Below, in pieces: positions 5,140-63,200 of a DNA stretch of 64,000 nucleotides (its first letter is position 1; every line of letters begins with the position of its first letter). Source of the stretch: Takakia lepidozioides (Eukaryota; Plantae; Bryophyta). The notes beneath the pieces are model-generated. The model was not told the origin of the DNA. It ran no database searches and was given only the letters and a program-made list of their open reading frames with translations. The translations under genes and the position numbers were made by a program. The stretch lies in assembly GCA_030704615.1 (NCBI GenBank), contig CM060732.1, positions 56,792,001-56,856,000 of the forward strand, given 5' to 3'.

Positions 5140-6141
5140 TAAGCATGCAGCGCAATGGAATGCAGAACAAAATTTTTGCGGGCTTCATGGTTGATAGTGC
5201 ACAGGCAAATTTCAATGTTGTGCGGCGCGTGTTTGGTTCGGGGGATCCTAAGGTCCCAATGGAAAATAGGGAGCGCACATGCCTCTTCCATTGGAGTCAA
5301 TCTCTGGCACGTCATACAAAGCGCTGCATTCGCCCTGACCTCCAGTTGGAGCACAGAAGGCTCTGCCTCAAGTACAAAAATGCCATCTCAATGGGAGAAG
5401 CTGAGAGCACTTACCAAGCAATCCGGGCTTGGTGGTTCTCCTCTGGTGCTGCTACTGGTATCCACCTGAAGGAGTTGGAGGACTAGTTGGTTTTCTAGCA
5501 CTTCAGGTACAGACAATGGGGAGCTTTCATGACGACGGTAAGCCTCTTCAATCCCAGAAACACAAATTTCACTTTGCATCGTGCCTGTTCGTTTGGGGTT
5601 GTTGGATTGTCACTTGCAGAACCTTTTCCATTTCCTTTCGTTCCTCACATTTGCATGCAATGCCTCCTGCAGGACATGTCCTTGGAGGACTTGGCCGACA
5701 TGCCATCCTGTAATTTGGCGGAGACTGTTCACAACGCCTGGATGCAGCAGTCTACCAAAGCAGGACGTAACTTGTATGTGGCCACTGCTGATGACATGGT
5801 GCGGGCACTTACACAACAAACATATACATCAATTTTCTGATGGGACGGGGCGGAGGCAAGGGCCCTGATACGACTTTGTTGATGCTAAGGGCTGCGAGCA
5901 GGTCCGGAGACCCATCGAAGATGGCCAAAGCTCTGAATAGGTGCACTGAAGGCTCCCCTTTGCAATCCAGGGTCCCCCATTTGGAAGGCGAGGAAAGATT
6001 TGGATCATGCAAAAGGAAATTGAACACTCCTCCAGGGTCGGATGGAGATTCCCATCGGCCGGACAGGGTCAATTTCTCTGTACCAAAGGTGTCTCCGGTG
6101 CAGACTAAGTTGTGTGCCCGCCCCTTCCCAGGTGGGTCCTC
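5140..6141 (+). mobile_element. MULE/Mutator-like transposase fragment (copy 1), with one GT-AG intron 5538-5672
   Basis: FMVDSAQANFNVVRRVF...CLFHW (catalytic D and CxxH), then SCNLAETVHNAW (catalytic E region). Near-identical sequence at 48520-48823 and 63780-64000. Intron gtaagc...ctgcag. Confidence 0.75.

Positions 6142-25746: not shown

Positions 25747-25782
<36 letters not shown>
25747..25782 (+). repeat. (GA)n microsatellite abutting the GT47 start codon
   Basis: About 18 GA units running into the ATG. Confidence 0.95.
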
Positions 25783-25785
<3 letters not shown>

Positions 25786-27916
25786 GGTACTACAAGTATG
25801 TAGTGGGTGGAGCCATGTGCCTGGTAATGTTGGTTTTTACACTGCGGGCATTGCCGGACTTGGATTCAAGGCATCCCAGGCATTTCAAGAGCTCCCGAAG
25901 ATTTGCAACCCACCTAAAGCCACCTTCTGATGTCTGCGATGGGAAGAAGGTATATGTGTACGATTTACCCCCTGTATTCAACGTTAGGCTTCGTGAGAGG
26001 TGCGAAGGGGGTCTGGCAGATTGGATTGATTTCTGCCCACATTTAGTCAATGATGGAATCGGGCGGAAAATAGAGGACTGGCCTCATTGGCATTTGACGG
26101 ATGTTTACATGTTGGAGGTGATTTTCCACGAGCGAATGCTCTCGTATACATGCCGCACGGACAGCCCTGCCGATGCTGAAGCTTTCTTCATCCCCTACTA
26201 CGGAGGCCTGGAATCATTGGAGTATCTCTATGGGTCGAAAAACACTTCAAGAAACACGCAGGGAACTGAACTTACAGAGTGGTTGCGGAAGATTGCTTCG
26301 GATTCGTGGAACCGTTATGGAGGTCACGATCATTTCATGGTTTTGGGACGGACCTCCTGGGATTTCACCCGCTCGAACGACACCAGCTGGGGCACAAGGC
26401 TCCTTCAACAACCAGACCTGAAGAATATCACTACACTGGTGCTAGAGAGGATGCCTTGGGCCTATACCCAGCAGGCGGTGCCCTACCCCTCCTCTTTCCA
26501 TCCTCCCTCACAATCCGGCCTTGACGACTGGATGAGGAAGGTAGGGGAATCTCCATATCTTTCATTTGTACATGCTCAGAAAGATTGGGTTTAAGATCAG
26601 ATTTCTATGTATGATTACGAGTGACTGATATGGTGGAAGCCTGAAGTAATGTGTCGGGGAGGATCAAAGGTAAAATGGTAGTTAACTTAATTTGTACACC
26701 CAGTCATACTTTGATGCCATTGTTAACACTGTATAAACGATGATGCGATGTATGCATGGAGGGACTGGGTAGGGAAGGACAGAAGAATATTTGCTGCTTG
26801 CTGTGATGTAGTAAGGCTTATACATCATTGCTCATGCATGAGTGGGCGGGTTGGTGAAAATTGCAAAGAATAGGACTGATTAGAAAATAAAGAGGACACT
26901 GGCAGATAATAGTATGGGCTCATGACCGTGCGGATGAATATCTTGCAAAATGACTACAGAGGAAAAGCCACCAGCCACTTGCCCTAGCATGTCAAGTATT
27001 CTTTTAGCAGTAGTACTCTGGGTATAATTTTTTTCTTTATGAGTGCATGTGTGGATTGATGTGGGAAGGAACAGTCAAAGGACTGAGTAATGGAATAGAA
27101 GGACAATTTTGTAATGTGAACGGAAGTACATCTACTGGGATTAAAAAGTGGGTGTGACAAATGGGACAATGGATGGTCCAACAGACCTGTCTCTTTGCCC
27201 TTCCACTTCAAAGATGAGGTGATCATTCAGTTGTATGTTATCTGCAGGTGAAGGATGCACGGAGGACCTCTCTTTATACATTTGTGGGTGCCCCACGCCC
27301 CAATAAACCAGAGGATATACGAACTCTGCTGATCGAGCAGTGCAATGCCTCCTCCAGCTGCAGCTTTTTGGACTGCCGGAAAATCCCATGTAGCCACAAT
27401 CCGGTGCCCATTGCCCAGGCCTTTCTAAAGGCTGATTTTTGCTTGCAACCGCGGGGTGATACTGCAACCCGGAGGTCAGTCTTTGATTCGATGATTGCAG
27501 GGTGTATACCAGTATTCTTTCATGCTGATTCAGCCTACACACAATACAAATGGCATCTACCTGAGGATCCTGCGCTATACTCTGTATACATTGATGAACA
27601 AGAAATACGCGATGGGTTGAATGTAGAAGACATTCTCAATACATTTTCGCCAGAGGAGATTGAAGGCTTGCGTGAGACTGTTGTGTCTCTCATTCCAAGC
27701 TTGGTGTATAAGAACTTTTCAAGCTCCCAAGACTTTGGCAGGATGCGAGATGCATTTGACATTAGTATAGAAGAACTTTTGAAGAGAGTCAAGGCTTGGA
27801 AACAAGAGCAGCGATTTTGTTTAGTTTGCTTTGTTGGTAAGCTTTTTCTGGTAGTTTCGTGTGTTTGTCTGGTGGTGCGCTTCTTCAAACGTCGTCCAAG
27901 ACTTCTTTCAAATTGA
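25782..27916 (+). CDS. Exostosin-family GT47 glycosyltransferase (xyloglucan galactosyltransferase MUR3/XLT2-like clade). Exons 25782-26540, 27248-27916; ~475 aa
   Basis: N-terminal signal-anchor; CDGKKVYVYDLPPVFN, LEVIFHERM, FFIPYYGG, GGHDHFMVLGRTSWDF, AVPYPSSFHP, FCLQPRGDTATRRSVFDSMIAGCIPVFF, AYTQYKWHLP. Phase-0 GT-AG intron. Confidence 0.93.
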
Positions 27917-28269: not shown

Positions 28270-28780
28270 ATGCACTCATTAAGACGTTTGCCGTAGCCTT
28301 GTGGCCATTGACCCGGCACTCAGTTTGAGCGGAACACAAAGGGACAGAAACTACCTTTGTGAGGGGCCGACGCTGGTAGTATGACTTACTTTGAAACAGA
28401 CAATTAAGCCGAGTTTTCCAGATATCCTCTAAAAGTCCCTTCACAAAAGCATCAAGCTGCTGTGTGTTTTGCCCAAAAACTAGGCCCCAAAAGAGCCTGG
28501 ACTTTTGGCTCACCCTCACTTTCAAAGTTGGTAAAGAGAGGTTCAGGCACAATTCCCTTCATGGATTTTAAGAGGGCGTCTCTCTTGTGAGAGTACCCAG
28601 GACAATGAATCAGAAAATGAATATTGTCTTCGGGTTGCCCGCACAACGGGCAATTGCAAGCCCTCTTTCCTCTCTGCATCTATTTGCTATTCCAAGGTAG
28701 GCTTCCCGCCCAGAGTTTAAATTTCAGTCTAGTGCCGCGGGTGGGTAAACCCATGAGGTCATCCATGATGTCCTCCTCCA
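28270..28780 (-). mobile_element. 3' fragment of an RTE-X-like LINE
   Basis: GTRLKFKLWAGSLPWN..CPLCGQPEDNIHFLIHC (CCHC knuckle)..LEDIWKTR..CRVNGHKATA, then a (TC)-rich tail. Confidence 0.6.
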
Positions 28781-29244
28781 CGTCACAGACTGGAAACAAG
28801 TTCAGGGAAGTTTTTTGCCTAACTTCATTTTCATCAGACAATGTCTTGGCAACAAAAAATTGCCAGGAAACTACAGCCTTTGGACACTAACAGCCTCTAA
28901 GTCAGATTTATCCAGCAGGGGTCAAGACTTGCGGGCTAGTTCAGATCCTTGAGAATCTCTTCTACTCTCTTCCGCCAGGACTTAGCATGTTTGACAGGGA
29001 GATCCTGCTTCCAAGATATAGAGTCGATTAACTTAGGATATCTGATGTTGGACATATGTTGCAGCTGACCCGTCAGAGAGAGTTCGACCAAGGGACACCG
29101 TTCAGAAGAGTGTCTGGATGGTGTTAATTTTGAAGGGGAGTTGATTGGTAGGGGTTAACTCTGAAATGGGAGGATCAACATCTTACACAGAAGGGTACTT
29201 TGTATTATGCCTTCAAAATCAGTAGAGTTGTCCCTTTGATAATG

Positions 29245-29478
29245 TTGGAGGCCATGCCCCAGTGCCGATTCCCGGGAAAGACTGGGCGTCGCGGTTCATA
29301 CGCGGTCCAACTGTGTCCCAACACAGCCTGCTATTGGACTACATGGAACCGAGACATCAACGCGACGGTCAACATCATGCACCGGTTCTTGGAAATGCGG
29401 GACTCCCGGCCTCGCCACCCGGCATTCTGCAGGGTGGAGAGGCCGGAGAGGGACTTGCCCGGCCGCACATCTCATTAA
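29245..29478 (+). pseudogene. Fanzor/TnpB C-terminal fragment (second half of Zn ribbon plus RuvC-III)
   Basis: SYAVQLCPNTACYWTTWNRDINATVNIMHRF...RHPAFCR matches the Fanzor1-type C-terminus C-x(n)-C..WNRD.NA..NI.....RP..F.R. GC-rich island; RuvC-I/II absent. Confidence 0.8.
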
Positions 29479-29561
29479 GACTACCATAGTAACAGGCAGT
29501 CCGCGCTGAGCGGGCGAGGGTGCAAACCCTCTCCGCAATGATGCACAATGGTGGGTTTTGA
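29475..29561 (+). ncRNA. Putative Fanzor omega-RNA scaffold
   Basis: Starts at the stop codon. Outer stem TTAAGAC.TACCAT (29475-29487) pairs with ATGGTG.G.GTTTTGA (29548-29561). Inner hairpin GCGG..GAGGGT-GCAA-ACCCTC..CCGC (29510-29536) has a GNRA loop. Confidence 0.6.
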
Positions 29562-32500
29562 TACTCATGTTGAGAAGAGATGAATGTAACATACTTGGAT
29601 GGAGCAATGTCAAACCTACAACAAACGAACCCCAAATCCTCAATAATTATGTGCCACCAGACAGGAGCTGCTTCCTGAAAGCACTACCATCCAATATATC
29701 CGCTCCATATCTCTGATGTCCATATTAAGCTCCAGAGAACGTCTGCTTACAAACACTTGCAAATGGTGTCCAAAACCATTGAGAATAGTTTGTTGCACGT
29801 GCAACTAGTGAATACTCATAAAACAGAAAACATAATTTGTATACAACTGAAGTCGATTTCCAAAGCCTCTGAAAATAGTCCAACAAAAGTGGAACCTATG
29901 GAACCAAATGCTCTTGCCACCACATCCCATGGCACTGCTCTTCTGAAAGGTACTAACATCATCGCACAAAAATCATGCTATAACCTGCTCTCTTTTACAC
30001 AGTACTCATTCACAATCCAATGGCGACATACACCATCCTACCAGCACATATCTCTCTGGATAATTATATTGGCCTGCACTACACACACGCCCCAGTGCCA
30101 AACTATTACTATTACACATTTACTGCTGAACACTCTTATTACTGGGAAAGATCCACTGCAATCAAATACAAACTACTACACAAAAGCTATGCAACACTAT
30201 GCTACTTCACGAGAGGCACTTATAGAACTTTGTCATTTTTCCCTCCGACCTTTTTCCACTCTCCATGGACCTATTCAAAACGGCGCATTAAAGCTGCTGC
30301 CCAATCTCCAGTTATATTATCACCCACATTTCCCCCCTCTAATGTATGATATACACACACACCCCACCACAACAGTAAACCATATACATATGCTACAAAA
30401 ACAACTGCATGGTTACATAGTTGGCAGACATTGATTACAGATACAACATTGGCACACCTGAGGCGGGACTCCACGTCTAGCAATACATCTAAAATTCACG
30501 ACACACAAACAAAAAATATTTACCCTTGACAATGCATCATTCAAAAAATCCTAGCTCCAATTACAAAAAGGTCTCATGCCGCCAGTAAATTATATTCCCA
30601 ACACATTGCACAGTACGACCTCCAGCTGTGTATCATTAAATTGCTTACTCCATCCCACTGTCCCCCTCTATACCATGTTCAGCGTCAAGACCCCAAGCAA
30701 GGCCCCCTCTACGTAGTCACATTTAACAAAGCCTCTGCCAATATAGAACCAAAAAACAAAACAGGAACCAATCAATTATGCTTATCAAACCCATGTCCAC
30801 AAAACACCTCCGTTGGTATCCCTCAAAACCCCATGCAACCTACAAATATTGTCACACAGCTCTTGCCGGACACGGATAGCTCTATGTATGTAACTAATGC
30901 AACACCCCCTCTCGCTCAACTGCCTTGCTACACCATGCAAGATTCAAAATTTGTTATTAAAAGCTACATCCACATCGACTGGCAGCTACTGTGTGCAGAT
31001 ACAGCATTAATGCACCTGCGGCCTGATGCCACATGCAGCAATATATTCAAAACTCATAACACACGAACTAACCGTACTGATTCCCTCCTAGTAACTGTAC
31101 ACATGCAAACTATTTACAGCCTGATGTATGAATACTTTCAGAAATCCACGATGTTCCACAAATACATATCAATTACAACAAATTGTACCTCAATCCCCAT
31201 TAAACAACCCCTATTAGCTACAAGGTTGAGGCAGACTGAATGCCAATTACAAACACCTAGCTGCACCAGGATACAACATATGCTGCTTCATGATTACAGC
31301 CCTGGCCCCCCTTACCGCCATCAATACTCAGCCATATGTACCCTACCGCCACAGTGCCCCATTCAAAAGACTCGAGCCTCAATTTTAATATGGTCTCACA
31401 TCACCAATAAATACTACCAATGCATTGCAAACTGCTCCAACCAACTGTAAATCAACTACGCTCCACACAACTCACAGATCATGCAATATCCCTCACCTCT
31501 CGCTACTACAAATGACAAATCTCAAATCCCTAATTCACTAATGCCTCCGAATTGGGCTGATGTCAGCCCCTATAACCTCATGCATCTCTCACAATTGCCT
31601 CATTGCAACAAGAAACAATTACCCTCGCAACCTGGCAAAATAGCCCCATCTACGCTACCAGACCAGACGCTCTCTTACCCCCGCATTCCACCCCTGCTCC
31701 TACCTGCAACCCACTCACAAATACTTCGACAGAGTCTAAATCAACCAGATACACATAGACAGGCCCCTTATTTCTACACTGCACACTGGATCCTACGAAA
31801 ACACATTAAAAATCCCCTGCTAATTGCCCGCATAATGCAAGCAGAAAGCTCACCACATAAAATGAAGCTGCCATTTGCAGGACCCCCAAACGCCGACCTT
31901 GACCCCCCCTGCCATACTCAAAATCCACCCTAACCACCCTGACAACGGCCTTGACAACGCTGTATGTCATTAAAATGCAAATACATATCACTCAACCTGT
32001 CAACATACCATAGCTTTTGAGTCAGAAATCCATAATGCCTTGCAGTCTCATGACAATTACAGCAAGCTACATTAAGCAGCCCCTGGTAATGACACCTGAG
32101 ATGCAGACTACGCACCCATTTTTCTCATTCACCATTCCCACCAAAACCACACACGCCGCAGTTCGCCTACAAATAATCCGCCCACCACATCTCCCCTCAC
32201 ATAAAGCCACACAACTCCATAAAAAAAACTCAATACACGATCATACAAAACTCACTACACGAATCTACAGAAGATCCTTGGTGTCAGGCACCCCAATACC
32301 GCTCAAAACTGCTCACATTGACAAGCAACCAGAATATTTCGAAATGGGAGTTCACTTGAAGATCACACTAGCTATGTTTTTATGTTGAAAATTATCCGCT
32401 CAGGTATTTTGCAGAAGGCCTCTATAATCCCAAGGATAGGAAAATGTACATGAAGAGTTGTCGACCAGTACATGCCATTTGGACGCTGCTCTAGGACAAT

Positions 32501-33573: not shown

Positions 33574-34281
33574 CAGCATAGCTACGGCGTAAGCCCAGCC
33601 CCGTGAGCCTGAGAGCTGAGCTCACGCTTCAGGGAAGCGTGAACGGCACAAATATGCTGGAGAAGCAGGTCCTATAGGCGAGGATTGCAGGAAGAGGGCC
33701 TATGACCGTGGACAAAACAAAGGGGGCCACCATGCACCATGTCTGCAATGCCTGCACAAAAAGAGGAATATGAAAATATGGCAAATTTGAGCTCAGAATG
33801 ATTGACACACTTTATTTCAATTCACAGATAGACGCTTACAATGAATGGCATGTACATTTGCCCTGGTTCCGTGAACGAAATGTATGTGTTTGTCATAAAT
33901 GCAAAGTCTTCACATGATAACCTGGAAATCAGCATGGGATGCGGGCATGGCTCGTATGTGTTCAAAGAGAATCTGGCGGAGCCCTACGTGAGGTGTCCCG
34001 CTGCAGAAGGGTGATGACTTCTCCATAGCCTAGTGTGGCTTGGTGAATGAATTGGTCTCTCTTACCTTCGCAACACATAATTACAAGGTATATGTAATAT
34101 TGATGCTTGCAGGGGACCACTTCCCTCTCATGCCGAGAGCGCCCTCACGCATCGTTACAAAATCCGGATAAGTGCACGTAGGGAAATTCCCCACGGTAAC
34201 CTGATATTCTTTGCCATGAAGAACTGAGCCAATAGACAGCACTGTGTAAATCCGTCCATACCCCGGGGTAGGGACTTCGGT
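33574..34281 (-). mobile_element. MULE-SWIM family 3' end and terminus (copy 2)
   Basis: YQVTVGNFPTCTYPDF..GKW SWIM region. Collinear with 47381-48120; homology begins sharply at CAGC(A/G)TAGCTACGGCGT in both copies. Confidence 0.8.
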
Positions 34282-35253
34282 GTCGGATAATTGAGACATG
34301 TAGACAGTATATTGCAGATAGTAGCATACAGTTGCAGAATAGAGGAAACCTTCCCTGAGGCTAAGCATTGTGTGAGTTGGCTGTAGTGGCCGCCGCAGGT
34401 CTGATTGACCGACTGGGAGCTGTGTGTGCAGTAGTTGGCAGGTATCAGTGTGTTGGGAAGTCGAGTCTTTATCCGATGCATGTCCCTGGGGTTTGAGTAA
34501 TTGAGCCTGCACGAGGTGGATACACCATAGGTAAGAATTTGGTAAGCGCACTTCACTTTCCCATCGATCATGGAAAGACAACATAGGAAAAAACCCGTAA
34601 GGTCTTGTTGCGAAATTGATAGAGAGAGACAGACACAAATCAGAAGGATAGGAGGGTTCCCTGTAGATCATGGAGTAGTAGAAGATGTTATGGGCTGGCA
34701 GAATAGAAACAATTGTGAGACTCTCATCGCGGCACCCCAAGTCCACGTCCCTTGGTGGTTTGTTCGGGTGGGTTGATGTAGGATAAGTTGCATGCGTGCT
34801 AGTATTTGTTGTCCGATGAGCTCCACATACAGATGCAGAAATGGATGTCAGTCTGGCAAGGAACCTGAGATCCAGCTTAGCAGCCCCAGTACTCCCACCA
34901 AACAATTCCATCAAGTTCGGATCTGAAGCATTAGTGTTCGGGGGCCAGTCTGTAAATGACATAGTGTAGGGGGGGGATTCTAAAATAGCTGCAATATATA
35001 TAGGCGTTAAGAGAGGCATGTTGGTTGGAACATCAACAGATACAATGTATTGGAAGGGTGATACAGAGGTAGTTTTTGAGAGTTTGTCGATCATAAATGA
35101 ACTTGTTAGGGGCTTACTTACAAAGAGCAAGCTGCTTGGAGGCGCGCTCGGGAAATTGTCCTCAAAGAAAACAATGGGCGGAAGATGAACCATACAAAGA
35201 TTATTCAAAAGATTATCAGCAAAGAGCGCTATGCGCTATGCCAGGTTGAATTG

Positions 35254-37296
35254 TCACATTGCTGGTAGTGGGTGTGGCATACTTTCCCAGCTGCTTCTGA
35301 ACAGGGTATTGCACACCAGATTCCAACGGGCTACTGACTTGATGAATTGCCTCGTAGTTACAGAGTTACCTAGCTCAAAACAAAATTCATCAGACTGGGT
35401 GCATTGCCAAAAAGGCTCAACAACCAGCCCCTGTCCATCAATAAGTTGCAATGCAGCGCAAAACATAGGCCCATGGGTAGTATATGTCTTAAAAGAACTC
35501 TGGGGACAGGTTTCGTTGCAAATTCCAGATATGAGAGCTCCCTTGGTGTACTCAAAATCTGCAGGTTCATACCTTTCCATTCCTGCACCTGCCTCCCTCT
35601 GAACGGCAGTGTTTGGTGGGCCCTTTGGCAGCAAATGCCTCCACAAAGATGGTGGTCCAATGCTTGTTGTTGGTGGGACATCGGGTGCCACCGCTGGCTG
35701 GCCAACTTGTTGATTGACTGGACTGGTGGAAGGTTGGTTTACCTGGTCAGATACAGGTTGGGAGGCTGCTTGAGTAACAAATAATAAATGGCCAGCTGGT
35801 TCATCTTTCGACTCCTTTACAGGTGCCATAGTGCACAACTTGATCATCTCTGTTGCCACATTCATGGAGTAACGGTGACCGCTGTCGGGCTGATTTCCAT
35901 TCCCTGCGGAGAGTTGTTGGAGACCTGGTGGAAGATTTGCAGTCAATCCAACTGAAACACCACCAACTGCAGTCCCTGTCCTATGGGCATTGGTTACCAC
36001 ACTGGTCACCAGCTTCTCAACAGGTCCAGATGTAATTGCCATCTGAAGCACAACTGAAACATTGAAATAATTCTTCAAACCTCTTGCATTCTTATTCAGC
36101 TCATCTGTAAGCGAAGATGTCGACAGTTGCACCGGTGGTGTTGCAGCCGATTCATTAAAAGTGCGGTGTCGGGGAATCGAATCACTCCCTGACGAGTATG
36201 GTTCCGGGAGTGGGTTGGAGAGCATACTGGGCTTGGAGTCCCCAGGTTGCAACCAGACCCTATTTTCAAATGAGAAGAGGTTAGCATTGTTGCACCAAGA
36301 GCTGGTGCTGAGGGCCGAGGGCAGAGTATAGCAGGGACTTGCCGGTTGGCTGTTTGTGTGGTAATTGCTGAAGAACTGGAAGGGAGGAAATTGAGTCCAA
36401 GACAGGCGACAATATTGCGCTGGGAGTCTTTGGTGGTGACATCTACAGCATTTGTTGACAGGGCCAGTACTCCCTCGGGTGTCCAACCCGAGATTGGTCT
36501 GGACAAAGCTCTCCTGGAGCCGACTGCCCACCTTATACAACCTTCTGTCCATTAATGTACTAGCCATCATAAGTGAGCCAGCGTGGGCAAAAGGCCGGAT
36601 GCTAGAAGAAATAAAGCCCCCCACGGAGCTGCGCTGCTTGAGAGAGGGAGACGAGCGAATGTGAGGGCAGCTTTCGGTATCATAGCCAACATGCAATTCG
36701 CTGTTTTTTGCGCCAGCACGGTGTGCTGCCGTGCCTTTCAGCCCAGGCCCGCTGCGCCAGGAGTCAACCGCTACAATAGTGCGCCCATGTAAGTCAGCCC
36801 TTTGAGATGCAGAATGGGAGGTCTCAACCATGAGTGCAGTCTTTGACGATTTCCGGGAGCGAGTCACGCTGTGAGCTCGAGTTAATAGAGCTCCTGTGGT
36901 GTACTTGCGATCTACAAATGTCTTCACTTGAAATGAAACAATGAAGGGATTGAAGAGGGGATTGTTACCATGGGCAGCAGGGCTGATGCCTTGGTCATGA
37001 ATGGCGTGGTTGATGAAGGGTTTCCGTTGAGGGTATTGTTGCCTTTGGAATAGATAACTTGGAGTAGATGTCTTCCTCGTATCCACCCTCAACTTGCCCT
37101 TAATGTTGACTCTTAGATCTGCGCTGTGGGGAGGCCGACTGCGAGCCTGGTGATGCGTCATGCCATACCACAAACCCTCGACAGTGCACCAGCGTCGGGA
37201 ATAGGCGATGTTCATTTGCGAGAAAGCAGGAATCATCACAGAACGGGGGTGAAAACCTCCGCCAGAGAAGAAGCAGCTCTGGGATGAAGTGGCCAA
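35254..37296 (-). CDS. Long ORF of unknown function (680 aa, Ser/Pro/Gln-rich), flanked by same-strand ORFs of 312 aa and 375 aa
   Basis: ORF length only; no recognisable domain. Confidence 0.3.
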   Translation of the reverse strand: MATSSQSCFFSGGGFHPRSVMIPAFSQMNIAYSRRWCTVEGLWYGMTHHQARSRPPHSADLRVNIKGKLRVDTRKTSTPSYLFQRQQYPQRKPFINHAIHDQGISPAAHGNNPLFNPFIVSFQVKTFVDRKYTTGALLTRAHSVTRSRKSSKTALMVETSHSASQRADLHGRTIVAVDSWRSGPGLKGTAAHRAGAKNSELHVGYDTESCPHIRSSPSLKQRSSVGGFISSSIRPFAHAGSLMMASTLMDRRLYKVGSRLQESFVQTNLGLDTRGSTGPVNKCCRCHHQRLPAQYCRLSWTQFPPFQFFSNYHTNSQPASPCYTLPSALSTSSWCNNANLFSFENRVWLQPGDSKPSMLSNPLPEPYSSGSDSIPRHRTFNESAATPPVQLSTSSLTDELNKNARGLKNYFNVSVVLQMAITSGPVEKLVTSVVTNAHRTGTAVGGVSVGLTANLPPGLQQLSAGNGNQPDSGHRYSMNVATEMIKLCTMAPVKESKDEPAGHLLFVTQAASQPVSDQVNQPSTSPVNQQVGQPAVAPDVPPTTSIGPPSLWRHLLPKGPPNTAVQREAGAGMERYEPADFEYTKGALISGICNETCPQSSFKTYTTHGPMFCAALQLIDGQGLVVEPFWQCTQSDEFCFELGNSVTTRQFIKSVARWNLVCNTLFRSSWESMPHPLPAM

Positions 37297-38524
37297 CCGA
37301 AAGTCGGGGGGGCGTATCCGAAAAAGGAGGCGATGCCAGTTGCGACCCTGCAGATATAATCAAAGCAGGCTGCGAACTTCTTACATGCTGAAGCAGCATC
37401 GTATCAGTGGGCGAGAGTGGAGCCAGTTGCGTTGGTGTCAATGCATCCGATTCATTCAGGGTGGTCTGAAGCCAGAATCCGCTATGGGAAGATTGGGCCC
37501 CAGTAAAGCGCCAATAGCCGCTATTGAGAGGTCTGGGGTGGGTGGAGGGAGAAGAATAGTAGGCCTGCTGAAGATTCCCCTTTCTGGCACAATCGAGGCA
37601 TATACGGTACTGCCACTTTAGTGGGACCTTGTAAGCATACTCATTTTGAGTTGTCAGGAGAGAGTACTTTGGAAGCAACACATAGTGCGGACAGTGAAAC
37701 TGCATCGAAACATCAGCACTTTGTTGAGTGTCGTAATGGTAAGTGGACTGAGGCTGTAAGTTGTGCGGTCGTGTGGGCGCCTGGGGAGTGTGCTGATTGG
37801 GAGTCAGAGTAGCCCGTCGATCATTCAAGTAGTTGAGAGTGTGTGGCTCCGCATGGTAGCAAGCCGTGTGAGGAGCTGGGACGACAATCTTGGTCCTGCA
37901 GGTGACATACTTCGTGAAATCAACTGAAATAAAACAGAGAAGAATCATCAGAGAGAAGCGAAGCAAGTAATGAGAGTGACGACGGTCTGGGAGAGAAGAT
38001 TGCTGCGCAGTAGGGGAGCAAGCAAAGGACACAGCCATGGTGGCGACCGTAGCTAAACCACTAGAGAGGGTAGAATAGCGGGTGTACTAAAAAAAAAGGG
38101 GCGCAAAGGCAAGGGTGGAACGGGAAAAATAGCATAACCTTAGAAACTTAGTCATGGTTAACAGAGTAGCGGAGGGGACGGCGGGGAGGCGGAGCTCCGC
38201 CCCATGTCCAATTTGGTCGATAAGCCCATAAATCAGCGACAACGGATAACGATTCTTAACCCTTAAGTGCCCAGCGACAAAGTTTGGCTTTTTCAACCCG
38301 TGCGCAGGAAAAACCTCAGAAAATCTTGAAAACAAAAAAATTTTAAATTTTGAATGCACATTAGGTGTGTACCTACCTCGTGCAGGGACACACCAAATTT
38401 GCAAATCAGAGCAAGATCGCCAAAATGCCACCGTTGAATGTAGGGTCCATTTTTGGACCGCCTCTCATTGTTTAATAATAGGGTCATGAATGCACGGGCG
38501 GGCCCTGCCAGTACGACCCTTGGG

Positions 38525-40088: not shown

Positions 40089-42125
40089 ATCGAGCATAAA
40101 ACAGATTCCACAATCCCACCCATGGGATCCTCCCCCTTGTGTTCATGTGCGAGCTGCCAGTTGGGGCAGGTTACTGGGTTCAATTCAAAGCAACTTAGTC
40201 TTTTCATAACAAATGCCTGTAGCAAGACCTGAACATGCAACTATGCCTCCTCCACACTACACTATGGCAAGGACTAAACTAGCATCATACTACCAGAGCT
40301 GGTTATGTTCTGTTGCAGCAGTACTAACTACGAACTGATTAGTCACCAAAAATCCAAGCACAACTGCCACTACAGCCTAGAACACTCAAAACCCTGCACG
40401 CAAAATTGGCATATCACAAAACTACCACACATGAGCTGGCTGCACCCATAACCAGATCTCGGAGTGCTGCACCAGCCAAGACATACACATGCGCATTAGG
40501 AAGTGACCATAGACTTCCCACACACCATTGACCCACTATCCTAGGACTTGTCAAGCGACTCCCTACACTAAAGTAGTTAGTAAAACCTCTTCAAGCTCAA
40601 AACTAGCATGAAAGCACTTACCCCCAAGCACGTTAGAGTGTTGAGGAACAAACACAAGGCCATAACCTAGCCCATGGACACTCCACCTTTCGGAAGAGTC
40701 TCCACGTCTCTGCAGGAGCAATCAATCAAAATGTTTAGTGAACCACCAGCCACTCACAGCATCACAGAAGGCTATGGCTCCGCACAAAACAACGTCCAAG
40801 GCACATGGGAAGATCTCCACACATTGCACAGAAGTACCTCTGGCGAACACCGCATTCAACACACTTCCTCCTCCTACTACTTCCGAGGCAAAAGTGAACT
40901 GCACCCGGGTTGGGCACGTCTGAACCTGGCATCACTGTTCTCTTGGGAGCAACCCACCCCTCCGTTAGTCCTTTAGCTATAGCTAAATTGTATAGCATGT
41001 GGCTACGAGGCGTCTGGCCCTTTGCTGCCATCCAGCCCAAGTACAAAATATAAGAATTGACCAAAGAGGTGTCCACGGAGTGGAAGTACAACCTGTGCCA
41101 CCACTTGTGGTCACGGGTCTGAACTGAATAGTAGCCACGTAGTTGATCCTGCACATCCACCCCCCACATGTGGTGCTAATAGTGCACCACTATGGGGGAG
41201 GTCGGCACAAGGCGTCTAGCCCCCTCATGTATTCTTTCAATGAAACAATCTTCACCAACAGGGGAGATGGCAGTACTCAAGAGGGTCACCATTTTCCTGT
41301 CCATCCATGAAACAGCCGCCAACTTACCAGATATGTGCATGCGCCATTCCAGCCTTCCCCTCTCACCATTTTTTCCCAAATCAAGACAAGAAGGAAACCC
41401 CACCCTCGCTGTTTTTACTGTGCCAGTAGCAAAGATGGACTTGGCTGCCAAGCCATAGAAAAGAAGAGGGCTACTGAAGAAGTTATCCATAGTTACTATA
41501 TGACCCTTCCCTTCAAATCCAGCCAGTAGCCTTGTGACAACTCCATATCCAGACCCATGCGTCAAATCATTTTTCTCATCCTTCCCTAGATACACCTCCA
41601 GTTTGTGAACATACTTAGAAGTTGCCCCACACAAGCACCATGACTTTATGCCCCACTTCACGGGCTTCTTCGCCATGTACTGCTGAATTCGAGCATACCT
41701 CCTTTTATACTTCACCATTTGCTAATCCACACACAGGTTCTGTTCAATCATTTTGGGCATCTATAAGCCAATGGGTTTTCGCTAGCTTATCAAATGCTGG
41801 CTCGTTTGGATCAGTGACCACATCTCTGTTGTCAACAAGGTGGAGGCATCTCAAGATGCTCTCCCACCGGTTGCGCGACATGATGCGAATTATAGAAGGG
41901 CAATTGAAGAAACTATCGTTGTGCTTCCAGTACAGCCTAGTGTTAGGAAATTTCTTGATGCCCATAAGAATATGAACAGCAATCCAGGCCCTCAATTCAC
42001 GAACTATAAGCGGGTACCACCATCTACCCCCTTTCAGATTTCCATTCGAATTCAATGTCCTTGCATACAGGTTGGTCATTGCACATATTCTCCGCATGAT
42101 AGAGACTGGCCAAAACAAATTGAAA

Positions 42126-47380: not shown

Positions 47381-48823
47381 CAGCGTAGCTACGGCGTGAG
47401 CCCAACCCCGTGAGCCTGGGAGCTGAGCTCACATTGTAGCTGCAAAGCGTGAGTTGAGCTCACGCTTAAGGGAAGCGTGAGCGGCACAAATGTGCTGGAG
47501 AAGCAGGCCCTATAGGCGAGGATTGCAGGAAGAGGGCCTATTACCGTGGACAAAACAAAGGGGCCACCATGCACCATGTCTGCAATGTTTGCACAAAAAG
47601 AGGAATATGAATATATGGCAGATCTGAGCTCAGAATGATCGTCACACTTTACTTCAATTCAGATAAAGACGCCTACAATGAATGGCATGTGCAATTGCCC
47701 TGGTTCCGCGAATAAAATGTATGTGTCTGTCCTACATGCAAAGACTCCACACGATAAGCTGGAAACCAGCACGGGGAGTGGGCATGGCTCGTTTTTGTTC
47801 ACTAAGAATTTGGCGGAGCCCCACGGCAGGTGTCTCGCTGCAGAAGAGTGATGACTTCTCCATAGCCTAGTGTGGCCTGGTGAATGAATTGGTCTCTCTT
47901 ACCGTCGCAACACATAATTATAAGGTATATGTAATATTGATGCTTGCAGGGGACCCACTTCCCTCTCATGCCGAGAGCGCCCTCACGCATCGTTACAAAA
48001 TCCGGACAAGTGCACACAAGGAAATTCCCCACGGTAACCTGATATTCTTTGCCATGAAGAACTGAGCCAGTAGACAACACTGTGTAAATCCGTCCATACC
48101 CCGGGGCTAGGATTTCGGTGATACGAGTCACCCGAGCCTGCAAAATTCTAACCGATTCCATCTTGCAGTCGTGATCTGCACCCGAAGCGACACGGCACAC
48201 TGTTTTTCCATCTCTTTTTGTTGGGTGGGAGTCGGCACCGGGTGGAGGCATTGCCGGAGCATGTGGCACATATGTGCCCAAAGTGCATGAGGGCACCACC
48301 CGGGACCGTGCAAGACGGAACCCCCCCTCCTCCAGCATGCTTATCTCATTTGATGACAATGATGTCCCAAGTTTCACAAGCCAAATTGCGGGCGGAGGGG
48401 GCTTCATTATAACCGAAGGACGAAATGTTCCCTTGACGCATCGTGCCATATCGTCTGGGCAGAACCAGAACTTGTGGTCCTTTGACTCCCCACTATGATA
48501 AGGTTGGAACAACGCTATGAATGTCTCCGCCAAATTACAGGAAGGCATGTCGGCCAAGTCCTCCAAGGACATGTCCTGCAGGAGGCATTGCACGCAAATG
48601 TGAGGAACGAAAGGAAATGGAAGAGGTTCTGCAAGTGACAATCCAACAACCCCAAAGGAACAGGCACGATGCAAAGTGAAATTTGTGTTTCTGGGATTGA
48701 AGAGGCTTACCGTCGTCATGAAAGCTCCCCACTGTCTGTACCTGAAGTGCCAAAAAACCAGCCAATCCTCCAACTCCTTCAGGTGGATCCCAGTAGCACC
48801 AGAGGAAAACCACCAAGCCCGGA
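47381..48823 (-). mobile_element. MULE-SWIM family fragment (copy 3) with terminus and internal deletion at ~48520
   Basis: WLVFWHFRYRQWG..SCNLAET|..KFWFCPDD..CTCPDF..CKHQYY (SWIM)..FIHQATL. Confidence 0.85.
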
Positions 48824-51800
48824 TTTCAAGTATGCCATGTTCAAAATACCCCTAATTGGAAGCCCTTTCTGATTGTTTTTTGATGTCTAAATGTGCCACA
48901 CAGGGCCAGTGTGCCAAGTTCAAAACACCCGTTGTTGGAAGCACCCCTCTCAACCTCCTTTTTTATTTAAAAATGGGCCATGTTTGATGTCCAAATGTGC
49001 CACACAGGGCTAGTATACCATGTTCAAAAAACCCGTAGTTGGAAGCACAAAAGAGAGTGCGGCAACGCACACTGTTTGTGCCCCTCTCTCAGCCTATTTT
49101 TAGATTTCAAAATGGGCCACAGGGCCAATATGCCATGTTAAAAAACCCCTAATTGGAAACACCAAACAGTGTGCTTCAAAACACACTGTTTTTGCTCCCC
49201 TTTATGCGTGTATATTGATGTCTAAATGGGCCAAACAGGGCCAGTGTGCCGTGTAAAAAAACCCTATAGTTGGAAGCACCAAACAGTGTGCTCCCCTTTA
49301 TGCTTGAATATTTATGTCTAAATGGGCCACATGGGGCAAGAGTGTCGTGTCAAAAAACCCCATAGTTGAAAGCACCAAACAGTGTGTGTCAACGCACACT
49401 GTTTGTGCCCCTCTCTCAACCTATTTTTAAATTTCAAAATGGGCCACACACAGCCAGAATGCCATGTCAAAGAACCCCTAATTGGAAGCACCAAACAGTG
49501 TGCTTCAAAACACACTGTTTTTGCTCCCCTTTATGCGTGTATATTGATGTCTAAATGGGCCAAACAGGGCCAGTGTGCCGTGTAAAAAAACCCTATAGTT
49601 GGAAGCACCAAACAGTGTGCGTAAACGCACAGTGTTTGTGCCCCCCTTTCTAGTTGTTTCTTCATGTCTAAATAGGCCACACAGGGCCAGTGTGGCAAGT
49701 TCGAAACACCCGTAGTTGGAAGCACCAAACAGTGTGCGTCAGCGCACACTGTTTGTGCCCATCTCTCAGCCTGTTTTTGGATGTCCAAATGAGCCACACA
49801 GGGCTAGAATGCCATGTCAAAAAACCCCATAGTTAGACACACCAAACAGTGTGCGTCAACGCAAACTGTTTGTGCACCTCTCTCAGCCTATTTTTAAATT
49901 TCAAAATGGGCCACACAGGGCCAATATGCCATGTTAAAAAACCCCTAATTGGAAGCACCAAAGAGTGTGCTTCAAGGCACACTGTTTGTGCTCCCCTTTA
50001 TGCTTGTATATTGATGTCTAAATGGGCCACACAGGGCCAGTGTGCTGTGTCAAAAAACCACATAGTTGGAAGCACCAAACAGTTTGGGTCAACGCACACT
50101 GCTTGTGCCCCTCTCTCAGGCTGTGTTTAGATTTCAAAATGGGCCACACAGGGCCAGAATGCCATGTCAAAAACCCCCTAATTGGGAGCACCAAACAGTG
50201 TGCTTCAAAACACACTGTTTTTGCTCCCCTTTATGCTTATATATTGTTGTCTAAATGGGCCACACAAGTTTTGTGTGCCGTGTCAAAAAACCCCATAGTT
50301 GGAAGCACCAAACAGTTTGGGTCAACCCACACTGTTTGTGCCCCTCTCTCAGCCTATTTTTAGATTTCAAAATGGGCCACACACGGCCAGAATGCCACGT
50401 CAAACAACCCCTAATTGGGAGCACCAAATAGTGTGCTACAAAGCGCACTATTTTTGCTCCCCTTTATGCTTGTATATTGATGTCTAAATGGGCCACACAG
50501 GGCCAGTATGCCATGTCCAAAAACCCTATAGTTGGAAGCACCAAACAGTGTGCGTCAACGTACACTATTTGTGCCCATCTCTCAGCCTGTTTTTGGATGT
50601 CCAAATGAGCCACACACGGCTAGAATGCCATGTCAAAAAACCCCATAGTTAGACACACCAAACAGTGTGCGTCAACGCAAACTGTTTGTGCACCTCTCTC
50701 AGCCTATTTTTAGATTTCAAAATGGGCCACACAGGCCCAATATGCCATGCTAACAAACCCCTAATTGGAAGCACCAAACAGTGTGCTTCAAAGCACACTC
50801 TTTGTGCTCCCCTTTATGCTTGTATATTGATGTCTAAATGGGCCACATAGGGCCAGTGTGCCGTGTCAAAAAACCCCATAGTTGGAAGCACCAAACAGTG
50901 TGTGTCAACGCACACTCTTTGTGCCCCTATCTCAGCCTATTTTTAGATTTCAAAATGGGCCACACACGGCCAGAATGCCATGTCAAAAAACCCCTAATTG
51001 GGAGCACCAAACAGTGTGCTTCAAAGCACATTGATTTTTCTCCCCTTTATGCTTGTTTATTGATGTCTAAATGGGCCACACAGGGCCAGTATGCCATGTC
51101 AAAAAACCCCATAGTTGGAAGCACGAAACGGTGTGGGTCAACGCACACTGCTTGTGCCCCTCTCTCAGCCCGTTTTTAGATTTCAAAATGGGCCACACAG
51201 GGCCAGAATGCCATGTCAGAAAGCCCCTAATTTGGAGCACCAAACAGTGTGCTTCAAAGCACACTGATTTTGCTCCCCTTTATGCTTGTATATTGATGTC
51301 TAAATGGGCCACACAGGGCCAGTGTTCCGTGTCAAAAAACCCCATAGTTGGAAGCACGAAACGGTGTGGGTCAACGCACACTGCTTGTGCCCCTCTCTCA
51401 GCCCGTTTTTAGATTTCAAAATGGGCCACACAGGGCCAGAATGCCATGTCAGAAAGCCCCTAATTTGGAGCACCAAACAGTGTGCTTCAAAGCACACTGA
51501 TTTTGCTCCCCTTTATGCTTGTATATTGATGTCTAAATGGGCCACACAGGGCCAGTGTTCCGTGTCAAAAAACCCCATAGTTGGAAGCACCAAACAGTGT
51601 GCGTCAACGTACACTGTTTGTGCCCGTCCCTCAGCCTGTTTTTGGATTTCAAAATGGGCCAGGGCCAGAATGCCATGTCAAAAAACCCCTAATTGGGAGC
51701 ACCAAACAATGTGCTTCAAAGCACACTATTTGTGCTTCCGTTTATGCTTGTTGATTGATGTCTAAATGGGCAACACAGGCCGAGAATGCCATGTCAAAAA

Positions 51801-52690
51801 ACCCCTAATTGGGAGCACCAAATAGTGTGCGTCAACGCACACTGTTTGTGCCCCATCTCAGCCTGTTTTTTGATGTCTAAATGGGCCACACAAGGCCAGT
51901 ACGCCATGTGAAAAAACCCCCTATTGGAAGCACCAAACAGTGTGCTTCAAAGCACACTGTTTGTGCTCCCCTTTATGCTTGTATATTGATGTGTAAATGG
52001 GCCAAACAGGGCCAGAATGCCATGTCAAACAACCCCATAGTTGGAAGCATCAAACAGTGTGCGTCAACGCACACTGTTTGTGCCCCTCTCTCAGCCTATT
52101 TTTGGATTTCAAAATGGGCCACACAGGGCCAATATGCCATGTCAAAAAACCGCTAATTGGAAGCACCAAACAGTGTGCTTCAAAGCACACTGTTTGTGCT
52201 CCCCTTTATGCTTTGTTTATTGATGTCTAAATGGGCCACACAGGGCCAGTATGCTATGTCAAAAAAAACCCCATAGTTGGAAGCACCAAACAGTGTGCGG
52301 CAACGCAGACTGTTTGTGCCCCTCTCTCAGCCTGTTTTTGGATCTCAAAATGGGCCACGCAGGGGCAGATTGCCATGTCAAAAAACGCCTAATTGGGAGC
52401 ACCAAACAGTGTGCTTCAAAACACACTATTTGTGCTTCCGTTTATGCTTGTTGATTGATGTCGAAATGGGCAACACAGGGCCAGAATGCCATGTCAAAAA
52501 ACCCAATAGTTGGAAGCACCAAAACAGTGTGCATCAACGCACACTGTTTGTGCCCCCATCTCAGCCTGTTTTTTGGTGTCTACATGGGCCACACAAGGCC
52601 AGTATGCCATGTCAAAAAACCCCTAATTGGAAGCACATTGTTTGTGCTCCACTTTATGCTTGTATATTGATGTGTAAATGGGCCAAACAT
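48824..52690. repeat. Tandem satellite, ~116-117-bp monomers in a ~233-bp dimeric higher-order repeat
   Basis: Alternating A (CCCTAATTGG..GTGCTTCAAAGCACAC..TTTATGCTTG) and B (CCATAGTTGG..GTGCGTCAACGCACAC..CTCTCAGCC) monomers. ORF starts recur at 233-bp spacing (50838, 51071, 51304). Confidence 0.95.
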
Positions 52691-54144
52691 GGAGTTCAAC
52701 AAGGAGGGTGGCATCAGTCAAACAAATGAGCTTGACCAGCAAGAGAAAGGAGAGGAAGCCTGGAAACGATGCCTTTACAGGTGCGAAATAGACTATGTTT
52801 CTTTGTTTTGCATCCAAGCTGTTTTGTGCTGCCTCATATGAGTGTGCGGTGCCGCACACACATTTGCTCTATCCGTGTGTAGTAACACCAACGTGCACAC
52901 CCTGGGCCCTTCAAGCTATTTTGTGTGCGGTGGTTGCAGTATGCGGTGCCGCATACTCTTTTAGGGGGTCTTCGTGATGTGGTAGAAAAGCTGGGAGACA
53001 ATAGTTGCATTGCATAATGAGGATGTCTCTGTGCCTACAGGTACATAAAGTATGTTCTCATGGCAGAGAACTGCTTGGACAAACATTCTGATTTCGTGGA
53101 CCTGTGGCTAGTTCCTGCTGGCAACCAGACCGTGTTTACTACGGGGTTCTTCCAGGACTGGGGTCGGGATCGTCCGGGAGAGATGGTAAATCTGCCTTCT
53201 TATTCCTCTTCTTGGTGGTTCCCGGATGGAGTTGCATAAGTCGCTCAAATGAATATGTAGGGGCCTGGTTTTCAAGCTTCTTAGTTCCTTGTGGATGTCC
53301 TATTTGCAGACTCGTTTGTTTGAAGCAGTTTGTCTCGTCCGAGTGCATCCACCTACGACTCCAGCCGTCATTAGGGAGTTCGCCATCACTCATGGGGGCA
53401 AGTTCATAGACGAGAGGACAGATCCTCCCACGGATGACATGCACCACAACTACGTAGACAACAACGTGTGCTTGCAAAGGGGGAATGGGGTTCCTTGGAG
53501 AGGGGCCAGGGAGAGGAGCCCGACTTTCATTCAAACGATTGTGGAGTGCTGCACCTACACCGACTCCAGAGTGATACACTTCTCAAGTCCTTCCGAAGCC
53601 CCTTCCCGGTGATATTGATACAGGGGAGACATCCGACAAGGAGCTGGACTCCGACTTTGCCTGTGAGTAAGTTCAAGCTGTGGATGCTTGCATTCTTGTT
53701 TCAATACCCATAATCACTGTTCTTAAGGCAAAGTGCACATGGGAGACATCCTCTTCGTTGGACTTGTGCTTGCATCATTGTATTCAAAATGGGTTTTTGC
53801 CGACTTGTGCAGGAGTCCGTGTGCTTCTACTGACCCTCCAAGGCTATCACACCTTTTTGGACTTCTTTCAAGTCCTCCTCAGTCTTACATGCTACCCGTC
53901 TATGCGGAGGCACTCGCAGCAAGCATGTCTGTTCATGGCACTCGCAGTCTTACCATCGACGGCCGTGGTAGAAGCCGTGGTGTTGGGACCGGAATCTTTG
54001 TGGATGACATAGACAAGAGGTCGATTCTGAATCTGATGACTGTGACACTTGATATCAAGTTTTCTCTTACTTTTGTTCGGGCCAATTTTGTTGGAAGTAG
54101 AGGCTGAAGGCACATGGCTAGAGTTTTTGCAATGATCTTGTAGA

Positions 54145-55270: not shown

Positions 55271-56245
55271 TCAATTTTTCCTGCCTTCAACTAAAATAAT
55301 GTGATAACCATGTGTGGATTGGAAAGGAGCACTAACAGATCCAACATGAGTGCAAAAAGCAACCTCTTGGAATGGGCTGGGCTCTTTGGCACGTGGAATC
55401 CAACCAAGATCTCCGCCTTTCTTGGCTGATGGACATTCAGAGTACTCGTATGCGAGTTTGCCAAATTCATTGGGGGGCACATGTTTGCCAGCATCAAGCC
55501 ATCCCAACTGCAACTTTTTGTAGGCGTTTGTGATTTTGTCTATTCTGTCGGACAAAATGTGCTTGACTCGTACATATGTACATGTCCCCATACTATCCAT
55601 TCTTGACTGTCTTCTAGAAATCATGGTTTGCTCGACATCGGACATGGGTTTCTTGCCTTTTTGGTCAAGAATAGAATGAGTTCGGTTGAAAGCCACAGAG
55701 AAAGAAGAGTTGCGGCGAGAGATGGAGGGTCTAGAGGAGGTAGAGGATTTGCGGCGTTCAATGAAAGAAGAGTTGCGGTTGTGGGAATAGGGCGCGGTAT
55801 GGGAGTTCTCAACTTGCATGCTCGAGCGTCCAATGTCCAACGAGCCCCCGAAAAGTGAGGAGCGTGAGTAACGTCGAGCTTCCTCTAATGCAAGCAAATG
55901 CGGCGGCTTATCCAACAAAACTTGAAATTGAGATCCTCTTCTTCGTCCTTCCTCGTATTGAGCATCATGTGCACTTTCGGAATTGTTTTTGTATTGAGCT
56001 TCGTCGCACGTGGATAGCTTGGATGCTCGTTTGCGCATGTAGTGACGATCATCCGTTGACATGTTGGGTGGTCGTGTCTTCATAGGCCCCGGCTCCAAAC
56101 TGCCATGACGTGCTTTACAAGGATGTACGTTCTTATCTTCCTTGATTGTTTCCCACTCCGACTCTCTCTCATTGCGGTAGCTTTTTATGAAAGTTTCTTC
56201 TTTAGACGAAGTTGCATCTCTAACACTCTCTCTTCGTTCCCCCAT
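55271..56245 (-). CDS. PIN4: Parvulin-type peptidyl-prolyl isomerase (Par14/PIN4-like) with ~220-aa Ser/Arg-rich N-terminal extension; intronless, ~324 aa from the first ATG
   Basis: GTCTYVRVKHIL..AYKKLQ.GWL..F..LA.EYSECPSAKKGGDLGWIPR..PFQEVAF..VGSVSAPFQSTHGYHIILVEGRKN matches the plant Par14 C-terminus. Confidence 0.85.
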   Translation of the reverse strand: MGERRESVRDATSSKEETFIKSYRNERESEWETIKEDKNVHPCKARHGSLEPGPMKTRPPNMSTDDRHYMRKRASKLSTCDEAQYKNNSESAHDAQYEEGRRRGSQFQVLLDKPPHLLALEEARRYSRSSLFGGSLDIGRSSMQVENSHTAPYSHNRNSSFIERRKSSTSSRPSISRRNSSFSVAFNRTHSILDQKGKKPMSDVEQTMISRRQSRMDSMGTCTYVRVKHILSDRIDKITNAYKKLQLGWLDAGKHVPPNEFGKLAYEYSECPSAKKGGDLGWIPRAKEPSPFQEVAFCTHVGSVSAPFQSTHGYHIILVEGRKN

Positions 56246-56814
56246 GATGAATTTGATGATACGAGTTGCTTCGCTACGGGTTTTTAACAATCCACTACAT
56301 ACAATTGTTTATCATTTTTTTTACCAACTTTTCAGAAGACACCAACATTAGATAAAAACCAATTTGTTTCGTTTACCAACTTCATTGATAATAAATTAGC
56401 AATGTAAACCCAACACTTAATTTGTCAAAAAACTCTATTTCTTCTCTACTCAATAAAATATGACCAATTGCAATATCACTTGTTGTTGTCGAATGGTTAT
56501 GAGGATTGAACTATTAAATAGTCTTATATATTTGAGGATGAAAATATACAAACCATATGATTACCAACAACAAACAATATAATCATATAAACTCTAATCA
56601 CTTCCATTGAACAATTGAAAAGTTCTCAATGAGTGAAATATTTCAGAGTTCGTCCAACTTGAAGTAAAATTCTATCATTTGTTCATAGGATTTAATCTTT
56701 AGATAGTGGTTCACCATAAGCTATCAAAATCGTTTCACATGTAGCTCAAACAATTGTTTCACCCATCATGACATGGAATATTTGCATGAAATTGCATGGC
56801 AAGAAGCCACTTTA

Positions 56815-62056: not shown

Positions 62057-63200
62057 GGAGGATCAGGTAGCAAGCCCATGGGAAAACCATGATTCGAAGG
62101 CTTGAAAATAGAAAGGCAGCACCCCGCAACACCACGTAAAGGAGATGAAACGAGTGCCACAAAGGCTTCCAAGGGCACAAAGCATGTTGCAAAAGATTGC
62201 TTTCTTATAAAACTGAGGCAGGGCCAAGCACCTGTCCACCCTGAACAAATCCTCCGCATATTGAGTCTCTGAAGCAAAATAGACTTGAGGGCCAGACAAG
62301 ACATCATAATGAAAGGCGAGGTCAGGCAAGGGGAACGTCTAGGGACATTGAATGGAACCAAATGGCATTTGTCGACCCCTACTTGTCTTAAGTAAGGCCT
62401 TGCAGAGCTGAAGAGAGTGAAAAAGAGGGTGGCTCACCGGAGGGGGAGCTTGGAGAGCCAGATCCATCGGAGCCAGATTAGCCGAGGGAGATTCCACCTA
62501 CATCGTGGAAATGACCATGAGGCCGTCGCTGGAGTGAGGCTTTACCAAAGAGGCAGCGTATGCTTTGGCTTTCTCAGCAGCGAACAGAAGCGTGTTACCC
62601 TCTTGGAGTATTTCTGCCATCCGCTGCTTATCCCCTTGCAAGCCCACATCATTAGGAATGGAGTTTCCAGATAGCCACATCATGCTAGCAATACCTGCCT
62701 CAAGCAGTCTGACTTCGGAGAGCCTCATGACAGGCAAGACCTGTACAAAGAAATCATAAGGAGCAACGTTTTGATAAAAGAGGAAGGAGCCAAAGTAAAT
62801 TAATGTTTCTGCAGATAGAGAAAAGAGGGGAAGTTGGGAGGAGAAGATCTGCTTAACCTTGGAGATCATGAGGTCAATTTATTGAGAATCAATAAGAGAG
62901 AAAACATCAACCTCCGAGATATATGTGTTGAGGAACATATTATCACCCGTCAAGAGAATTGAAGGTTTCCCGTCTGGAAAGGCAAAGATGATAGGGGTGA
63001 TTTGGATCTTCACTGTAACTGATCCCACCAGTTTGCCGCTGTCATTACGAAGTCATGCTGTCTCAGATAAATAAACATTCGAGAAAGACTTCAATTGATT
63101 CAGGCAATAGCTTGCCAAATTCGGGGGGATCCCTGCTTCAAGAAAAAAAGAAGTTGGCTTACCTTGAATTTGCCTCTCTGAAAGAAGGGATTTGGACGGG

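Follow-up and report, generated by a model that had tools for sequence, protein, structure and literature searches.

The window, a 64,000-nucleotide stretch of Takakia lepidozioides DNA that was analysed as a whole, contains a GC-rich island (29245-29572), 1.3 kb upstream of which, on the same strand, lies a two-exon GT47 gene (xyloglucan galactosyltransferase-like; 25782-27916, plus strand) with its first ATG directly after a (GA)n run. The best named matches of this gene come from Sphagnum, Ceratopteris and Diphasiastrum, and the window is therefore seed-free land-plant DNA. A very high-copy repeat (28600-29071; summed depth 1e5-1e6) ends at 29071; it is abundant in probable RNA runs as well and has no second copy within the window. 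Elsewhere in the window there are a tandem array of about 30 units of ~117/233 bp with internal palindromes (48840-52750), a piggyBac-like DDE_Tnp_1_7 transposase fragment (41176-41718, minus strand), a PPIase of the parvulin type whose N-terminus carries a long Ser/Arg-rich extension (55271-56290, minus strand), and pieces of one dispersed repeat family (33600-38000, 47450-48830, 63050-64000 and 5420-6140), whose ORF at 47802-48773 has a SWIM-like C-x-C-x(n)-C-x-H motif and no Pfam match. The island is the top 328-bp GC stretch of the window (58.8% GC; the fraction of stretches as high is 0.00016), and its CpG obs/exp ratio is 0.85 as compared with 0.3-0.5 in the flanks. Its features are the following:

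29235-29247, plus strand: left flank ending TTTGATA-ATGTTG, single-copy DNA (sequence, contig depth)
29245-29478, plus strand: Fanzor1 C-terminal fragment, 77 aa (Fanzor1 HMM, PDB search, alignment)
29314-29376, plus strand: second zinc-finger pair (C-x4-C) and RuvC-III motif W-N-R-D-I-N-A-x-x-N-I (alignment)
29403-29450, plus strand: predicted hairpin over the last conserved codons (z -5.63)
29479-29501, plus strand: SL-A, a predicted perfect 7-bp stem in paralogues, broken here by A29483 (paralogue letters, predicted fold)
29510-29536, plus strand: SL-B, made up of the GAGGGT-GCAA-ACCCTC hairpin and five further outer base pairs (predicted fold)
29546-29572, plus strand: SL-C, predicted terminal hairpin, with the right ATGTTG in its 3' arm (predicted fold, bin depths)
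29573-29587, plus strand: right flank, single-copy; it would serve as the guide of any omegaRNA produced here (contig depth, fold prediction)

The initial annotation had described the island as a Fanzor/TnpB remnant and had pointed to its GC richness, a C-x4-C pair (29314-29331), the motif WNRDINATVNI (starting at 29344), the stretch RHPAFCR (29413-29433) and the hexamer ATGTTG on both sides, all of which are indeed present, with the stop codon TAA at 29476-29478. The Fanzor assignment was borne out and could be narrowed to Fanzor1. An HMM built on 21 longer or full-length Fanzor1 relatives, from which the window peptide had been left out, gave this peptide 62.7 bits, while the maximum among 2000 shuffles was 5.8; the profile search proposed in the initial annotation thus succeeded with this model, while Pfam applied to the fragment alone returned no match and missed PF07282, a family matched by 12 of the 13 aligned family members. 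The best PDB matches of the alignment were the three Fanzor1 structures PpFz1, GtFz1 and SpuFz1 (E 5e-10 to 1e-8), as opposed to E values of 0.02 or worse for Fanzor2/TnpB structures. A homologue search across 1.84 billion representatives likewise retrieved Fanzor-type C-termini (best true match, E 5.8e-10); several other matches in this search were repeat artefacts, and the true ones were all of the Fz1 type. NCBIfam yielded weak matches to the fragment (a chance match to CLIC; Cas12c, E 0.2), and a word-index homologue search with the 77-aa peptide came back blank and is uninformative. Judged from its sequence, the fragment is nearer to Fanzor1 than to Fanzor2/TnpB, and with its second Cys pair and WNRD it displays the Fanzor1 hallmark of a C4 zinc finger followed by the RuvC-III RD motif.

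According to the alignment, the 77 residues begin immediately past the first CxxC pair of the zinc finger and comprise its second half, RuvC-III and the C-terminal tail, whereas RuvC-I, RuvC-II, REC and WED are all missing; the window copy can therefore encode no nuclease, and it lacks the full RuvC triad and the REC/WED domains that an active enzyme requires. The closest relatives, Fanzor1 proteins of giant-virus-like contigs and of Trebouxia, share 53-58% identity with it over the C-terminal ~45 aa. In a tree computed from 66 columns, the window copy falls in a large group of algal and viral Fz1 proteins without a fixed position, and hence we claim no donor. Scanning of the six-frame translation of the 64-kb window with the Fanzor1 HMM found no second Fanzor piece, in keeping with the earlier view of a truncated, non-coding copy that has kept the 3' tail of its family.

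The left junction of the island is bridged by a mismatch-free contig (29042-29339) and the right junction by another (29485-30200), both at the single-copy flank depth of ~60, as seen in two DNA runs on a single sample of this species, probably the one used for the assembly. These exact contigs across both junctions rule out an assembly chimera or a contaminant, either of which the initial annotation had regarded as fatal to its reading. The exact-match contigs listed cover 29042-29339 and 29485-30200 and leave out 29340-29484, so the private bases in that interval, including A29483, are not read-confirmed. Over the island, the summed depth in the DNA runs rises to ~370-960, compared with ~60 on both flanks, and 5-9 distinct contigs are present per island site. 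Summed depth does not itself equal copy number, and a fair reading of these data is that the genome holds about six or more other copies; the existence of a Fanzor family in this lineage, as previously surmised, is thereby upheld. Among the paralogue contigs, a strand-switch joint was noticed at 29305/29363. The 5' end of the parent element lies outside the 64-kb window.

The hexamer ATGTTG occurs at 29242-29247 and again at 29567-29572, and TTTGATA is common to the left flank and the right end (29557-29563). On the left, excess depth begins at ~29245-29246, and a contig of run X6 aligns from 29246; the last 2-3 nt of the left ATGTTG thus overlap the start of the Fanzor-derived sequence as a junction microhomology. 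On the right, a contig of depth 19.1 from run X6 covers 50 bases of the bin 29518-29571 and one base of the next and therefore aligns to 29522-29572, one contig of run X5 is best fitted as 29516-29574, and in the DNA runs the excess past 29571 amounts to ~1000 depth-bases, equivalent to 1-2 bases at a paralogue depth of ~600. As deduced from these binned depths rather than from aligned paralogue sequences, the family-shared sequence most likely ends at ~29572, where SL-C closes. It follows that the right ATGTTG is element sequence and that a guide would start at 29573; the initial annotation, which had placed the guide after ~29565, is not supported on this point, as the paralogues appear to match up to ~29572. 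A plain target duplication as the origin of the paired hexamers is not supported either; the right copy is most likely part of the element, and the left hexamer is identical to this terminal hexamer and resembles a target motif. Elements of the algal kin terminate in GTTA, which the truncated copies L015, L040 and L063 also carry in the left flank; the equation of target motif with terminal motif consequently has a parallel in close relatives. At the left junction of these algal copies, GTTA is followed by an 8-10 bp duplication, which the window copy lacks. No inverted copy of the right end was found upstream, and the left flank is single-copy; a local TIR element is thereby ruled out, and the pair of terminal inverted repeats typical of a Spu-1-type ghost or MITE is absent. 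When the flanks are joined across the empty site, they form an open frame of 79 codons that is indistinguishable from chance.

The RNA fold of the 3' tail needed to be revised. The 87-nt segment 29475-29561 does fold as formerly described, with a z value of -3.26 that none of 200 shuffles attained, and this part of the earlier claim holds for the sequence at hand. The same z value is reached by 3.4% of random 87-nt segments elsewhere in the window, and the predicted fold of this segment taken alone is therefore modest evidence. The long closing stem, in contrast, did not survive as a scaffold element: its predicted probability is 0.99 with the letters of the window and 0.01 with a G at position 29483, the base found in all six aligned paralogue contigs (the window has A). 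With this G, the tail is predicted to form the three tandem hairpins SL-A, SL-B and SL-C, and the long stem is probably either a misfold of a decayed copy or the product of an assembly error at 29483. No aligned contig carries A29483, which could thus be an error of the assembly and not a mutation. At 29515 and 29537, the window also has letters unlike most paralogues, and further private differences must exist within 29543-29568 because the window's contig does not branch there. The multi-copy depth to ~29572 and the three hairpins predicted with paralogue letters together describe a structured 3' region that is common to the copies and abuts the right end.

Solved Fanzor1 omegaRNAs all start with a 7-bp stem (SL1) that binds RuvC/TNB (PMC11423790), and SL-A is a candidate counterpart of this stem by analogy. 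The tails of the viral kin are predicted to form three tandem stems as well. SL-B is similar to hairpin two of the viral Fanzor1 tails (13/16 positions identical to L088), a weak likeness that was picked post hoc by eye, and a hairpin PWM, likewise post hoc, ranked the tail third of ~128,000 positions. A covariance model built from four viral tails did not detect the window tail, and comparison with 86 outside loci revealed no nucleotide similarity beyond the coding motif. The initial annotation had overlooked both the shared TTTGATA and the hairpin at 29403-29450, which is stronger than the fold of 29475-29561 (z -5.63 as against -3.26) and for which no counterpart was seen in the viral kin. 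Rfam contains no real family for the island; mir-2574 merely matches this hairpin, far below threshold. A TnpB-like pseudoknot (29507-29510 with 29564-29567) was also considered and was dropped because SL-B and SL-C use its bases in the paralogue fold and because Fanzor1 omegaRNAs are reported to have no pseudoknot (PMC13565253).

None of the RNA runs contained the window's own island stretch. Two probable RNA runs from other samples yielded short contigs of paralogous 3' ends, and one of them gave a contig of the coding part in which the RuvC-III codons are scrambled. The letters of the window copy or its flank are absent from every probable-RNA contig, these being assembled contigs that show neither strand, ends nor absence. 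Fold prediction pairs the would-be guide, at 29577-29582, with 29468-29473, and no target with two or fewer mismatches to a guide starting at 29573 exists elsewhere in the window. With no RNA from the copy seen, its first stem broken and the guide predicted to pair back on 29468-29473, the earlier suggestion that this locus supplies a guide in trans is unsupported.

We suggest that the island is probably a dead copy, truncated at its 5' end and intact at its 3' end, from a small multi-copy family of Fanzor1 transposons hosted by a seed-free land plant. The data show directly which protein this is, that the family is multi-copy, where both junctions lie and that the remainder of the gene is missing from the 64 kb; in the family, the ~95 nt past the stop codon, with their three hairpins to ~29572, would constitute the omegaRNA scaffold and the flank beyond would serve as the guide. 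By analogy with relatives, the copy probably arose when copying began at the 3' end of the element, at a site whose left side matched the terminal motif ATGTTG, and halted after ~325 nt; the new end would then have been joined to the left flank via the 2-3 nt of microhomology, as in one-ended transposition or aborted gap repair. Subsequent decay would have altered several sites, and one change would have broken the first stem and refolded the RNA into the long stem. The CRe-1/2/3 elements of Chlamydomonas offer a precedent, since their copies are frequently 5'-truncated and 3'-intact and lie beside the target motif (PMC3627910), and a comparable 5'-truncated copy (L091) occurs in a viral relative. 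Fanzor itself has been raised as the source of the break (PMC10288648); one copy does not discriminate between a break made by an HUH transposase and one made by Fanzor. Most likely, the window copy has no function.

An aborted Fanzor homing event would imply that the element ends with GATA at 29563 and that the guide starts at 29564; the empty site, made up of the TAM GATA and a 9-bp stretch, would have been cleaved by the Fanzor RNP and then mended by copying that stayed incomplete, and the 9-bp duplication left behind would later have lost 3 nt from its left copy. We consider both this placement of the end and this history rather unlikely. In its favour, TTTGATA occurs at 29557-29563 as well as ahead of the left ATGTTG, the left flanks of the nearest viral kin read (A/C)ATA, and algal kin show a motif plus 8-10 bp duplications, those of CRe copies measuring 7-19 bp (PMC3627910); yet independent paralogue contigs reach 29572 and ~29574, the excess DNA depth continues past 29571, 29563-29572 serves as the 3' arm of SL-C, and the 3-nt deletion has to be invoked ad hoc. 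It is very unlikely that the copy is instead a functional ghost locus that is transcribed, for instance by read-through from the GT47 gene, processed to an omegaRNA and loaded on a putative Fanzor encoded elsewhere. The complete tail and the paralogous 3'-end contigs in two probable RNA runs would fit such a role, as would the ghost omegaRNAs of Spu-1, which work with SpuFz1 in human cells (PMC10432273), but no RNA contig carries the letters of the window copy or runs into its flank, SL-A is broken, the guide is predicted to be partly sequestered and the window offers no target within two mismatches of it.

A combination of 5' truncation, 3' microhomology and a short duplication fits target-primed reverse transcription. 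LINE copies are present in the window and abundant; on this reading, a LINE reverse transcriptase primed on Fanzor RNA at ATGTTG would have left a 5'-truncated cDNA with a 6-bp duplication. Such a retrocopy is very improbable in our view, since there is no poly(A) or repeat tail, the fragment spans no exon junction, and in the algae this pattern has been put down to copying at the DNA level (PMC3627910).

The locus is an ordinary dead fragment, and its value rests with the Fanzor1 family in a land plant to which the reading as a truncated transposon copy assigns it. In the literature searched, whose large supplementary tables are searchable only in part, characterised green-lineage Fanzors were found only in algae (Klebsormidium, Chlamydomonas); no named land-plant Fanzor family was found, although Streptophyta are listed in the legend of one tree. 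A multi-copy Fanzor1 family that is fixed in the nuclear genome of a moss-like plant would widen the known range of hosts and could provide a compact editor native to plants. Why elements that carry Fanzor leave behind 5'-truncated copies with odd duplications is a question (PMC3627910; PMC10288648) to which the junctions of such copies are relevant. It is an unlikely extension that the land plant has a still-active Fanzor1 family that spreads partly by its own RNA-guided breaks, with truncated copies as homing scars that add guides to a trans repertoire. The use of the window copy lies mainly in marking the family's right end and target motif rather than in any working role.

Among known systems, the Fanzor1-Helitron2 elements CRe-1/2/3 of Chlamydomonas reinhardtii (PMC3627910; CrFNuc, PMC10530073) resemble the window copy in being multi-copy, in their 5'-truncated, 3'-intact copies and in the target motif at the left junction; they differ by a separate 7-19 bp TSD, which the window copy is without, and the host here is a land plant. 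Chlamydomonas has in addition 20 extra stand-alone fRNA copies (PMC10530073). The Spu-1 ghosts of Spizellomyces punctatus similarly retain an omegaRNA region without a coding nuclease, and they possess both inverted repeats, form a conserved family and have functional scaffolds (PMC10432273); unlike them, the window copy retains part of the ORF, is without a left end or TIR in its vicinity, and its first stem is broken. The closest characterised streptophyte Fanzor1 is KnFNuc of Klebsormidium nitens, likened here by description: its intronless gene is present in ~5 copies in an algal host, and the active enzyme uses a guide RNA from the 3' end and a TTA TAM (PMC10530073).

The uncharacterised Fanzor1 elements of giant-virus-like contigs (P0007, P0110, P0111) and of Trebouxia (P0112, L007-L084) share hairpin tails and truncated copies with the window copy, whereas the viral ones are TIR elements with TA ends, the algal ones end in GTTA, and the tails of both are not significantly similar to that of the window. 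The TIR/TA-ended viral family comprises L088, L002 and four loci on one 395-kb giant-virus-like metagenome contig (L001, L087, L090, L091); on that contig it is present in four or more copies, among them a 5'-truncated one, and its tails have covarying stems and (A/C)ATA left flanks from which a TAM is predictable. The Trebouxia-like metagenome contigs (JAABU*; L007-L086) hold several Fanzor1 families, all GTTA-ended, with nested 3' ends in L022 and L025, and the truncated copies L015, L040 and L063, flanked by GCGTTA and an 8-10 bp duplication, make a good set for testing aborted homing.
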